From Macrostomum lignano (Eukaryota): DNA of 64,000 nucleotides. The stretch spans positions 186,001-250,000 of the forward strand of contig NIVC01001388.1 of the NCBI GenBank assembly GCA_002269645.1, given 5' to 3'. Made by a program: the position numbers and the translations under genes. A model generated the notes under the pieces. It made no database searches and had not been told where the DNA came from. It worked only from the letters and a program-made list of their open reading frames with translations. How positions within the stretch are numbered: position 1 is the stretch's first letter; every line of letters starts with the position of its first letter. Shown one piece after another: positions 9,001-15,000 of this stretch.

Positions 9001-12000
9001 TGCTGCAGAAGAGCAAGAAAGGTGAGGGGCCTGTCGTATGCCTTCAAGTTTGAGTCATAAACCGCTGAGATTCGTCTCTTAACCACTGTGAGGTTCGTCT
9101 CTAAATCACTGTGAGATTCGTCTCTAAATCACTGTGAGATTCGTCTCTTAACCACTGTGAGATTCGTCTCTTAACCACTGTGAGATTCGTGTCTAAACCA
9201 CTGTGAGATTCGTCTCTTAACCACTGTGAGGTTCGTCTCTAAATCACTGTGAGATTCGTCTCTTAACCACTGTGAGGTTCGTCTCTTAACCACTGTGAGA
9301 TTCGTCTCTTAACCACTGTGAGATTCGTCTCTAAATCACTGTGAGATTCGTCTCTAAATCACTGTGAGGTTCGTCTCTTAACCACTGTGAGGTTCGTCTC
9401 TTAACCACTGTGAGATTCGTGTCTAAACCACTGTGAGATTCGTCTCTTAACCACTGTGAGGTTCGTCTCTAAATCACTGTGAGATTCGTCTCTTAACCAC
9501 TGTGAGGTTCGTCTCTTAACCACTGTGAGATTCGTCTCTTAACCACTGTGAGATTCGTCTCTAAATCACTGTGAGATTCGTCTCTAAATCACTGTGAGGT
9601 TCGTCTCTTAACCACTGTGAGGTTCGTCTCTTAACCACTGTGAGATTCGTGTCTAAACCACTGTGAGATTCGTCTCTTAACCACTGTGAGGTTCGTCTCT
9701 AAATCACTGTGAGATTCGGCCCTGAATCACTGTGAGGTTCGTCTCTAAATCACTGTGAGGTTCGTCTCTTAACCACTGTGAGGTTCGTCTCTTAACCACT
9801 GTGAGATTCGTGTCTAAACCACTGTGAGATTCGTCTCTTAACCACTGTGAGGTTCGTCTCTAAATCACTGTGAGATTCGGCCCTGAATCACTGTGAGGTT
9901 CGTCTCTTAACCACTGTGAGGTTCGTCCCTAAACCACTGTGAGATTCGCCAATAATCGCCCCTAAGCCACTGTGAGATTCGTCAAGAATCGCCCCTAAGC
10001 CACTGTGAGATTCGTCAATTCGTCGCCCGGCACCCGCAGGCAAGCTTCCAATCGTGGACTCAGACGACAATCTCGTCGCCCTGATCGCTCGAACAGATTT
10101 AAAAAAGAACCGCGAATATCCGCTGTCCAGCAAGGATGACAAGTGAGTGATGAAATTGATTTCAGGTGCAATTAATAAACAGTTGTTAAAATTGTCTATC
10201 ATATCAATTTTATATCACAATGCATATAATATTGTTGTGCAAACAATGTTGTTACTTACCGCAATCAAATTTATTGAATAGGAGTCGTCTGTTAGTTGGA
10301 GCAGCAGTGAGCACACATTCCAGCGGATGCGACCGGCTCAAAGTCCTGATGCAGGCAGACGCACAGCCGGATGTTGTAGTTTTGGTTAGTTAGAATACCA
10401 CCTGGGGACCGAGTTTTCAACCCTGGAATGCATAAAAATTATGTTTTTTTCCAAAGCTTAAAGAAAAACTTGAAAATAGGCTAGAAAAATGCTTGCTAGA
10501 TGACGAGGCGTTGGTTACTAAATATAAAGTCATATTTACTCTCGCTTTTTACCCAAACAAAATCAGCTTAGGATTACGACAGCAACTAACAAAAAAACTT
10601 GAATGTTTTGCGCAATCCGATTCAGCCTACTGAATTAGTAGTATAAAACAGTATACGAGCGTATAATTGCAAAGAATGTAAAAATGATTGAGGATCTGAT
10701 GTTTAGTTGAAAATTGACGCCATGTGGGTTTGACTTGTTTGTTTAGTTTTTGTTTGCGTTTTATTGCTTCATTATTGTTATAAATTAGTCACTTAGATAT
10801 TATAAATTATGAACACGCAATTGAATTTTTTTCAAGTTTTGCTTTTAGCAATTAAAAAATTGATTTTTCTAGAGTTAGTTACCAACCCATTAATTTATTA
10901 ATAAAAAGCTTTCAACTACTCATAGTGATATGATCACAGCCTGATTGATTGGCCTAACATAAACCTATATATAGACAAAGGTCTAAGAAATTTTTGAAGA
11001 TTTTGCGAGTAAAATTTCATTATAATTTTTCCTCAGTAAAGTCTCCTAACATGTCATCTTGCATTGTTAACTTAACTAATTAAATAGAAGGAACGTCTCG
11101 TGACATCATTGGCAAAATGTTCAAGAATTCTGAAGAAGCAGCCGTGATCTGTGGATTGTAGAGGTCATAGAACATGTACATGTAACCCGTGCTCATCCAC
11201 CTGGTTGTGTGCTAAGTGTCCGCCTACTTGTGGTTTCAAGGATCAATAACTGAGCGAGATTTGGGAATTAGGGCCCTTGTAATTGGACACAGTCACTGAC
11301 TATACTGATTGGACACAGTCACTGACTATTCTGATTGGACACAGTCACTGACTATACTGATAGGACACAGTCACTGACTATACTGATAGGACAGTCACTG
11401 ACTATACTGATAGGACACAGTCACTGACTATATTGATAGGACACAGTCACTGACTATACTGATAGGACACAGTCACTGACTATACTGATAGGACACAGTC
11501 ACTGACTATACTGATAGGACACAGTCACTGACTATACTGATAGGACACAGTCACTGACTATTCTGATTTAAATCTGTATCTGGAAACTCCTCTGCCTTGA
11601 TAAGCAGTTGATACACAGGAATAAAGAGAAAATTCACATTTCAGGCAGGCAGGGCGTCGCTATTTCTAGAAGTCTCTGTCTCAGGCTTGGGTTTCCATTA
11701 TTTTATGTGACTCAAACGGTTTTTAAATGCGTTTTTAAGTGCTTTATTTGAAATTTAAAAGCTGCTGTGAGAACGCTTGGCTGCCGAAGCGGAATTGAAG
11801 CCGTTTTTTTTCAAAAGCTTCGTCAATCATTCGTTCGATAAATTTCTGCGATTTCTGCAACAAGCTCTCCTAGAAGCAGCAGATCGACATGTCGCTCGCC
11901 AAGGACTTTGCGGCCCCGCTGCTGGCCTGCCTTCTGCTCTCCTTTGTCGTCCGGCCGCCGGCCGCCTCCGCCGCCTACCTGCCCGCCTTCTGGCGGCCCT

Positions 12001-15000
12001 GCCTCAGCCGGTCCCTGGCCGCCTGGGCCCTGCCCGCTCCCGCCGCCTCCCCGCTCGAGTGCGTCATCCGGGCCCGCTGGCAGCCGCTGTCGGGCGTCGG
12101 GGTGGTGCAGCGGCACCGGCGCAGCTCCGCCTGCTCGCTGTTCCTGTTCAGCCGAGTCTGCCACCTGCTCAGCCTGAGCAGCCCGGCCGACGACCCCGCG
12201 CTGGGCCCGGCCGACTGCGAGCTGTTCGTGGACGCCGAGCTGGACGCCCTCGTCGCCAACCGGCACTTCGCCGCCGTGTGGGTCGGCAACCGCGGGCCGC
12301 GGCTGGAAAACCTGGTCTGCGACGCCCGCGGCCAGAGGAACTCCGTCGAGCACGACGGGGTCGTCTGGACCAGCGACGGCGCCAGGATGGACGGCTCGAC
12401 GTCGCGGATGTGGGTGACGGACACGCGGGGCCTCGACTTCAACCGCAGCTTCACCTGGCTCATGGAGGTGAGCAGGACGCCTAAAGTGAACGCCTTCATC
12501 GAGCTGACCGACTGCAGCGCCTGCGGCAGGTTTTGGCTGCACCTGTGGGAGTGGGACGACAGCAGCCCCACGGACACCAGGCGGCTGTACATCCAGAACG
12601 GACACCGCAGCCTCATGTCCAAGCAGCAGATTCTGCCATCGGACAGCCAGCAATTCGCCAGAGTCGGTGCCGCCTTCGACGTCTCAGACGTGACGGGCAA
12701 GTCCAAGCTGTACTTTAACGGCGCTTTCCTGCCTGACAGTGACGTCACTCTCTATGGCATAAACTACTCTCCCATTACTGACTTCTGCGTCAATATTGGA
12801 TGGCGGTGCACGTACGATTCGTTTGGAAAGCTGGCCGGCACAGTGAAGGTGGTGGCCATTTCTAACAAGTACCTGACTGAGGATGACATCAACCAGCTGT
12901 TCCACCTGAGCGGCTGATGACAGCTTAAATGTGCCATTTGAGGCTATGTTATTATTTACATCGGTTTTGTAGTTCTATCTTTAATTTAGGAGCAAAACTT
13001 TTGCCTGTAAGCAAGTTAAACAAACGAAAATAATTTCAACGGTTAAAACGTCTATCCTTGCTATCAATATGAAGTCTTGTTTTATTATTTTTTTATCTGC
13101 GCACTCAGTCGGGGTTAAATAATTATAACAAAAGAAAAGGAAACATAAGAAGCTGATGAGTAAAAAGTGTTTTCGAGGTATTTGAAAATTGAGTCGACGA
13201 GTAGGACACTACTTAATAAATTTAGGAGACCTCACTAATGTTTGTCGCGTGCTATGGAATAAGGAGTGGGGAGCTTTAGGAGCTAGGGGAGTTGCCGTTT
13301 AGGGGTGAATTTTAGGAGCTCGTGTCCCATGGAAGGGGCGAACTGCAGTTCACTATGCTGCACTCCTTGGAACAACTCCTAAGCTCCTACATCTTGATGG
13401 TCGAACTCTATAGCACAAAAAATCCATTCATTCCTTGCTAGGAGCCCTTTTGATTCATAAATCCTTGATCTGTAAATCTGTAGCACGAATAATAATTTTG
13501 GATTGAAAATGTCTAGGACACTACTTACTATTTTATTAAGTAGTATCGTTAAAAGTTTTTAGTTTTTTTCATTTTTTCACAAAATTCTACTGCGACGCTA
13601 ATAAGTAGTAAGATGGTGAAATCTGGAAATAATGATTGCTTAATCCTATTACGAAATCGAATCTGTCAGGAACCAGCTGCTAGTTGGTGCGGCAATTGGT
13701 ACGCATGAGGATGACTTTGCCAGGCTGTCAGCTTTGGTGTCAGCAGGTGTAGATGTTGTCGTGCTGGTAAGAGTTCTCATCCAGCTAAATGGCATCATTC
13801 TCGGATCACAAGTCCACCTCACTATCTTGTAATTGTGGAACACTAAATTAAGCTGCGCTTAAATTTAAAAACGATCTGCAAAATAATCGTCTTTTTAGCC
13901 TACTTAAAGTAGCTATCTCTGATTCACAATTTTTTTGTGCAAAATTTGCCAGTTTTATTTATTTCACTATTTCTACACTCTTGCCAAATTTTTTATAATA
14001 AATTTATTAGGCGATTATTTTGGGTCTAATTTATAATAGCCTTTGATAAATAGCAACAAAACAACAACAGGCTGATAATAGCAGAAACCAAGGTTACTGC
14101 TAAGGTATACAGAATTTATATTAAAAAAACATTTTATTGTATTGCTTCCGTAACACTTGCTGTGTTTTCTGCTTACTGTGCCTATCTGCTTTTACTAAAG
14201 CACTAACAGCTTGTTTTAATAACTTTATTTGTGTACCGTGTACTGAGCTTGTCGGTTTATAGTTTTCAGAATTTATAAAAATACCAGTTGAGGAACCTTT
14301 CAACCTAGTAAAACAAATAATTATCATCCAGTGACGTCATCCGTGGAGTGACGTCATTATTGTTGGACATCAACTATCCAGTGACGTCATCCATCAAGTG
14401 ACATCGTTAATTGAGTGATGTCATTTGGTTGACGTCATCCATCGAGTGACGTCATTATTAACTGAGGTCATATATCAGTTGACCCATTACGCTCGTATTT
14501 TATCGACGGTGTATATTTAGCAACGCTAAAAATTGAATACCATCAATATAGTAATGTCATTAAGTGAGTAACACCAATATACTGAATTCACTTATATATC
14601 GACGTCATTAATTAAGTAGAGTTATTCGTTTCTTGGGATAATGATTAGGAAGTCACATCCGTTCTATTGATAACGGAGTGACTCAATAGAACGTTTCGTT
14701 GACTTAACGACCTTAAAATGGCTAAAATGTTTACTATACTTCTTGGTTTTAGGACAGTTCCCAGGGCAACAGCATCTACCAGATCGACATGATCCACCGG
14801 CTGAAGTCGGCCCACCCCGACCTGCAGATTGTCGGCGGCAACGTGGTGACCGCCGCCCAGGCAAAGAACTTGATTGACGCCGGGGTGGACGCGCTGCGCG
14901 TTGGCATGGGCTCTGGCAGCATCTGCATCACCCAGGAGGTCATGGCGGTGGGCCGGCCGCAGGCTACCGCGGTCTATAAGGTCTAAGATTTAGTAGTGCT

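Follow-up and report, generated by a model that had tools for sequence, protein, structure and literature searches.

A probable pair of mutually exclusive exons in an IMPDH gene of the flatworm Macrostomum lignano

In the free-living flatworm Macrostomum lignano, an IMPDH gene occupies positions 52-17147 (plus strand) of the window, the 64,000-nt stretch analysed here (assembly GCA_002269645.1, contig NIVC01001388.1, positions 186,001 to 250,000 of the forward strand). Two similar exons of this gene, called A and B in the following, probably substitute for each other in the mRNA. The gene was delineated by tblastn, for which human IMPDH2 served solely as the probe, and by reconstruction of the splice sites. 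Coding exons were found at 52-271, 8721-9021, 10040-10142, then A or B, and at 14753-14980, 15945-16276 and 16889-17147 (stop included), and the first coding exon (~39 residues) is located upstream of the window. The product has full-length similarity to IMPDHs, the catalytic Cys loop, the DSSQG motif and a Bateman domain (precomputed Pfam assignments PF00478 and PF00571). It is 67-68% identical to animal IMPDHs, its best PDB match is human IMPDH2 (E = 4e-237), and the version with exon B alone corresponds to UniProt entry A0A1I8H4I2 (100% over the window-encoded part).

Exon 4 (10040-10142, plus strand) is constitutive, encodes the end of the Bateman/CBS domain and contains the equivalent of human K238. 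A short intron of 139 nt (10143-10281, plus strand) separates it from the alternative exon A (10282-10384, plus strand; 103 nt, 34 codons plus one base), which has an open frame and AG/GT sites (...ttgaatAG before, GTtagt after). The alternative exon B (13670-13766, plus strand; 97 nt, 32 codons plus one base) is bordered by AG/GT sites as well (...ctgtcAG before, GTaaga after). From the end of exon 4 at 10142, both exons are entered in phase 2, and towards the start of exon 6 at 14753 both are left in phase 0. Exon 6 (14753-14980, plus strand) is again constitutive, begins with the DSSQG motif (human D274-G278) and holds the catalytic Cys loop. The donor of exon 4 (CAA/gtgagt) and the acceptor of exon 6 are common to A and B, and the Lys codon that is split at the end of exon 4 is completed by A as well as by B. 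This anatomy was established directly.

In tblastn, exons A and B matched the same 33-35 residues of human IMPDH2; aligned to structure 6i0m, the exon segment extends from human residue 241 (split codon) to 273. Between A and B, 17 of the 32 aligned residues are identical at 58% nucleotide identity, and, as judged from this alignment, their homology is far beyond chance. Like the other exons of the gene, exon A forms a GC island (55%) within intron sequence of 25-35% GC. The polypyrimidine tracts of A and B (9/18 each) are poorer than those of the six constitutive acceptors (12-14/18); weaker tracts are usual for alternative exons. Homologous neighbours with the same phases, similar lengths and canonical sites kept in three gene copies, A and B have the appearance of a tandem duplicate.

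The reading frame distinguishes sharply between the conceivable splice products. The A-only frame (514 aa in the window) and the B-only frame (512 aa) are both open to the normal stop. An mRNA with A and B is stopped within exon B, 12 codons from its start and 618 nt upstream of the last exon junction, and an mRNA skipping both exons has a stop in exon 6, 520 nt upstream of this junction. As double inclusion and double skipping shift the frame, only mRNAs with a single one of the two exons can yield enzyme; this frame logic is a direct observation. Exon B also contains an internal AG (13675-13676, plus strand; gaaccAG/CTGCTAG), the use of which yields a 90-nt exon B', and joining B' to exon A keeps the frame (103 + 90 nt).

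Public gene models disagree at this position. The existence of an A-only transcript model is established: GenBank entry PAA74063.1 (BOX15_Mlig001129g1), which derives from a further copy of the gene (L001), proceeds from exon 4 via A to exon 6 and skips B (...SSKDDK, A, DSSQG...). The M. lignano annotation has transcript data as its sole source (RNA-seq with STAR and StringTie, mapped de novo transcripts, TACO), and isoforms below 75% of the major one were dropped (PMC5730564). With a transcript-only annotation and such a filter, at least one A-only transcript must have been assembled, and it was not a trace isoform. UniProt entry A0A1I8H4I2 contains B only, and two others, A0A1I8HSL6 and A0A1I8I1M0 (584 and 585 aa), contain A followed by a B truncated via the internal AG; exon B' reads as a gene-model artefact in these entries. 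A fourth type, PAA75066.1 (BOX15_Mlig013749g1; 10001-16702 of the third copy, L003), is without A and B and truncated; it starts with an ATG within the final codons of exon 4 and passes directly into exon 6 (MTS/DSSQG...). This sequence is not produced by any canonical splice junction, and an error of assembly or annotation at the exon cluster is its apparent source. We attribute the conflict between these four types of model to the exon pair itself.

The divergence between the exons is deep. Synonymous sites are saturated (pS, the proportion of synonymous differences, 0.735) and nonsynonymous differences are far fewer (pN 0.30, omega ~0.13). Given this saturation and the protein sequence retained, a copy drifting for such a time would no longer resemble IMPDH. 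Compared to the IMPDH of Haliotis (abalone), A is identical at 20 and B at 22 of 32 residues, more than A and B are to each other (17/32), and each has kept ancestral residues of its own: V250, S251 and Q265 in A, and Q243, E254, D256, G267 and the loop length in B. The corresponding exon of a second, paralogous M. lignano IMPDH gene is about equally distant from both, all three pairs sharing 16-18 of 32 residues, and the exon duplication is therefore old, without a date being derivable.

Recent constraint was assessed by comparing three genomic copies of the gene, the one in the window and those in L001 and L003, the latter two from assembly GCA_002269645.1. The sequenced M. lignano line is known to have a partial genome duplication, which fits the extra gene copies (PMC5730564). 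L001 and L003 resemble each other closely, with the window copy standing apart; when the window is compared to L001, 15.1% of the intron columns but only 2.7% of the constitutive exon columns differ. Exon A has no variable column at all (0/103) across the three copies, whereas 12 columns vary in the 289 nt of intron flanking it (Poisson P ~0.014 for the zero of exon A), and no difference-free window of 103 columns occurs in ordinary intron between the window and L001. Exon B varies at three sites among the three copies, all synonymous, compared to 7-14% divergence in the introns on either side. Exon 4 shows one difference of synonymous type. Selection on both exons is shown by the deep and recent comparisons, and to the extent that these substitution patterns can tell, A and B are each under purifying selection.

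Most of what the original prediction had read from this locus stood. Exon coordinates, exon sequences, AG/GT sites and identical phases were confirmed by reading and translation, as was the frameshift upon inclusion of both exons. An old duplicate under purifying selection had also been proposed, in agreement with pS, pN and the identity of exon A in three diverged copies. The count of at least seven synonymous differences among the 17 shared residues was too low, 10 of the 17 residues being encoded by different codons. Exon A had further been called hidden; in fact it was already contained in PAA74063.1 and two UniProt models, though never described as mutually exclusive.

The two versions of the segment share the hydrophobic strand LLVGAA, T252-H253, the helix R-L and the strand DVVVL. 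Their differences were compared with 329 IMPDH segments. At human position 243, A has R and B has Q, the residue of 98% of the segments; at position 251, A has S and B has G; at position 256, A has G and B has D, which is found in 99% of the segments and is never replaced by G. Exon A has SSG where exon B has E254-D255-D256, and it is the sole sequence that alters both 243 and 256. In the helix-to-strand loop before D269, A is longer by two residues, an insertion seen in no other IMPDH retrieved, and B has the standard length. Exon B keeps every near-universal residue, and its identity to mammalian IMPDH2 (24/32) exceeds that of exon A (17/32).

The original prediction had mapped the exon correctly to human residues 241-273, including Arg at Q243, Ser at G251, SSG at E254-D256 and the retained T252/H253. 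Among the peculiarities listed for exon A, Q243R and the insertion of two residues stood. Ser at the G251 position had been taken as unusual, but it occurs in 29% of the 329 segments and is found in molluscs, brachiopods, annelids, a monogenean and the second M. lignano IMPDH gene; the truly unusual D256G had been listed merely within SSG for EDD. A weakened GTP inhibition had been stated for the human Q243H variant, and this was confirmed: human IMPDH2 variants K238R, Q243H and L245P, which lie near the regulatory/catalytic hinge, keep full activity and lose GTP feedback inhibition (PMC10407431).

A diverged tandem duplicate at the A/B position was not found in any of the ~360 IMPDH models retrieved. 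The IMPDH1 model of Pogona vitticeps (890 aa) was considered as an exon pair and rejected, since its segment repeat is exact and points to an assembly or model artefact. Only one exon occupies this position in the second M. lignano IMPDH gene (L002, NIVC01000892.1), which is 75% identical; the monogenean Cichlidogyrus casuarinus, too, has a single IMPDH exon here, with boundaries that coincide. The second gene has much shorter introns and is present in several near-identical copies (BOX15_Mlig005240g1, g3, g4). Protein queries of full length, 117 aa and 245 aa returned nothing closer than 75% outside M. lignano and no close fragments. The nearest match from outside the species, a Logan transcript from SRR6473827, was not accepted as a flatworm sequence as it looks mollusc-like. 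The literature search found no paper describing a mutually exclusive exon pair in IMPDH, in line with the original prediction, which knew of none, and no paper on IMPDH in Macrostomum; no paper found cites the locus tags, and IMPDH is absent from the lists in the supplements searched of the neoblast/germline transcriptome paper. Exclusive exons that stem from tandem duplication and are kept apart by the reading frame are a well-known phenomenon; what no paper found describes is such a pair in IMPDH.

Of the means by which exclusivity can be imposed, the frame applies here, double inclusion and double skipping both leading to a stop well before the last junction. Steric hindrance does not, the A-B intron measuring 3285 nt, and neither does incompatibility of U2 and U12 sites, all donors being GT with U2-type sequence. 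For a docking/selector arrangement of the Dscam type, no complementary 10-mer common to the three copies was found within 300 nt of the exons, by a crude test that can miss weak or G-U pairings. Inverted repeats near the exons are short and AT-rich only, and no Rfam family was detected in window positions 1-18500. The flank directly downstream of exon A (10385-10534, plus strand) is a candidate site of splicing regulation, with 7 of 150 columns variable in the three copies, and divergence climbs to ~12% beyond it. In the intron between exon 4 and exon A, 5 of 139 columns are variable. Between exon 4 and a point ~150 nt beyond exon A, the intron sequence is clearly better conserved than elsewhere in the gene, which would fit regulated splicing.

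The block 10019-10534 as a whole, which reaches from the last part of intron 3 across exon 4, the 139-nt intron and exon A into the next 150 nt, is ~98% identical between copies, introns included. It could hold splicing control elements or mark a gene-conversion tract.

We consider it likely, with good confidence, that the two exons form a genuine mutually exclusive pair and go back to an old tandem duplication in one of two M. lignano IMPDH genes. Exon 4 would be spliced to either A or B, and the selected exon would then be joined to exon 6. Since neither 103 nor 97 is divisible by three, mRNAs with both or neither exon would be frame-shifted and stop more than 500 nt before the last junction; the single-exon mRNAs alone would make enzyme, the aberrant ones presumably being cleared by nonsense-mediated decay. 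We infer that exclusivity in vivo would be strict, that aberrant mRNAs would decay, that the choice between A and B would be regulated and that the two products would differ biochemically. The isoforms would be identical save for one strand-helix-strand unit of the catalytic barrel, just after the return from the Bateman domain. Isoform B would be the canonical enzyme, and isoform A would keep the core and T252/H253 and carry R243, G256 and a loop longer by two residues.

As Q243H and L245P abolish GTP feedback in human IMPDH2, a choice of GTP sensitivity by splicing is the most likely role of the pair. Splicing would then select either a feedback-inhibited enzyme (B) or one with altered, probably weaker GTP inhibition (A). 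The original prediction had likewise proposed a possible switch, in GTP feedback, filament behaviour or inhibitor sensitivity. Our best guess from the residues concerned is that isoform A would be less GTP-sensitive than isoform B; that the isoforms constitute a switch in GTP feedback is a tentative proposal, with somewhat more to be said against it than for it. The same reserve applies to the more far-reaching idea of a toggle in the manner of PKM1/PKM2, in which a GTP-sensitive B and a feedback-resistant, high-flux A might be regulated by cell type (e.g. neoblasts/germline versus differentiated tissue); this is conceivable, but we would not expect it.

Several points weigh against the interpretation as a functional exon pair with different regulation. 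The pair is known from M. lignano alone, the collections searched containing no other Macrostomum sequence. The intron around exon 4 and exon A is conserved too, and gene conversion could explain part of the identity of exon A. The A-only transcript is known via the database model alone, and with exon A identical in all copies, reads cannot be assigned to one copy. The annotation behind the B-only model has an evidence basis that cannot be checked, and the third-copy GenBank model, truncated and without both exons, indicates that transcript assembly at the cluster is not clean. With respect to function, R243 occurs naturally in a few other eukaryotic IMPDHs and need not abolish feedback. Finally, the structure models, in which both versions were predicted to form strand-helix-strand with similar local confidence, were poor overall (mean pLDDT, predicted local distance difference test score, ~52), and only their local secondary structure was used.

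Some of these points could also be taken to mean that exon A is a non-functional relic spliced as noise and the A-only GenBank model an assembly artefact. B is after all the more canonical exon by identity to mammalian IMPDH2, A alters two near-universal residues and has a suboptimal donor (GTTAGT), and the model of the third copy shows that there are assembly problems at the locus. A relic is nevertheless improbable. Half of the residues, including the entire hydrophobic core and T252/H253, were kept while synonymous sites became saturated (pS 0.74); frame and splice sites are intact and three diverged copies show zero substitutions; and the annotation pipeline requires spliced reads or a de novo transcript for the passage from exon 4 via A to exon 6 and kept near-dominant isoforms only. 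As four independent lines, deep divergence, recent constraint, the transcript model and the exon-like properties agree that exon A is live and no decayed relic. The opposite assignment, with A as the exon really used, B (nearly) unused and no isoform switch, is hardly likely either. B is intact in three copies with just three changes, all synonymous, against 7-14% in the flanking introns, keeps every near-universal residue and is present in UniProt as a B-only model. The sole full-length transcript-derived model has A, to be sure, isoforms below 75% of the major one were discarded, and a transcript-derived B-only model was not found in the database records.

The two other readings let both exons enter the mRNA. 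If exon A acted mainly as a poison exon, the A+B mRNA would be degraded and IMPDH output tuned in this way, and the stop 618 nt upstream of the last junction would serve this purpose; regulated unproductive splicing, too, typically goes along with conserved intron next to the alternative exon. A poison exon has no need of a conserved protein, yet A keeps the IMPDH core with pN well below pS, its length exactly restores the frame when B is skipped, and the transcript model has A without B. We therefore regard this role as very improbable. It would be extremely improbable, in our view, that both exons are included by way of the internal AG of B to give a 584-aa enzyme with a tandem segment. A0A1I8HSL6 and A0A1I8I1M0 are built exactly so and the frame is kept (103 + 90 nt), but a further strand-helix-strand unit would have to be added to a closed eight-fold barrel, none of the ~360 other IMPDHs retrieved has a diverged tandem duplicate, and the transcript-derived annotation does not contain this form. 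Models that combine the two exons of an exclusive pair are a typical product of gene predictors where a frame-saving site exists.

Besides the exon pair, the gene has some further features. Intron 2 (272-8720) is ~8.4 kb long in the window copy and ~0.2 kb in the two other copies; the extra sequence, especially 3067-7015, consists mostly of satellite-like tandem arrays with periods of 48, 41 and 23 nt. More tandem arrays lie at 9066-10019, 11285-11567, 15078-15865, 16438-16849 and 17162-17657, i.e. in nearly every intron and in the region just past the stop codon, with periods of 23, 33, 26, 30/66, 12/24/34 and 39 nt and with copy numbers that differ among the three gene copies. A Gly/Ala-rich insertion of ~31-37 residues, located in the mobile flap region, is encoded at the end of exon 7 (window ~16160-16276); human IMPDH2 and the second M. 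lignano IMPDH have none, and its length and sequence vary among the three copies. The A-B intron contains a GC-rich, ATG-initiated open reading frame of 342 aa (11889-12917, plus strand) with a signal-peptide-like start, and in this stretch 4.1% of columns differ between the window and L001, against 15% in other intron. As a nested gene it was rejected, having no Pfam match and, in L001 and L003, an in-frame stop and two deletions.

Comparable arrangements are known from other genes. Exons 9 and 10 of vertebrate PKM (PKM1/PKM2) are a tandem-duplicated exclusive pair which swaps an internal segment and alters allosteric regulation with catalysis unchanged. This is the best functional analogy for the IMPDH pair, both genes encoding metabolic enzymes with one internal segment swapped, but the biochemistry of the PKM isoforms is established, while for M. 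lignano IMPDH it is inferred, in one flatworm species and for 32-34 residues at the regulatory/catalytic hinge. FGFR2 exons IIIb and IIIc are homologous neighbours with lengths that are not multiples of three; mRNAs with both or neither are frame-shifted and removed by nonsense-mediated decay. IMPDH A/B follows the same frame logic, and for FGFR2 tissue-specific regulators are known.

Within the IMPDH family, the retinal splice forms of human IMPDH1 differ in GTP feedback sensitivity and filament behaviour. These variants (isoform 5, PDB entries 7rfh and 7rff) are likewise spliced IMPDH forms, but they add N- and C-terminal extensions, whereas the M. lignano pair would swap an internal barrel segment by means of duplicated exons. 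The human IMPDH2 variants K238R, Q243H and L245P affect the same short stretch, and exon A is substituted at Q243 itself. They are pathogenic point mutations in a gene with a single isoform, with His at position 243, and exon A is a conserved, encoded alternative with Arg. Vertebrate IMPDH1 and IMPDH2 provide two differently regulated, selected versions by whole-gene duplication; the M. lignano exon pair would be an extra level within one gene.

IMPDH sets the flux into guanine nucleotides, and GTP feedback and filament assembly of the enzyme are an active field of research. Human mutations in the stretch concerned break the feedback and lead to neurodevelopmental and retinal disease. A genuine exon pair would offer natural, selected alternatives at a hinge-proximal segment in an otherwise identical enzyme, and with them a ready-made experiment on GTP sensitivity. 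M. lignano offers transgenesis, accessible stem cells and regeneration, so that isoform use would be traceable in vivo. Should the pair prove to be a regulated toggle, it would be the first internal module swap known for IMPDH and a switch for guanine nucleotide synthesis.

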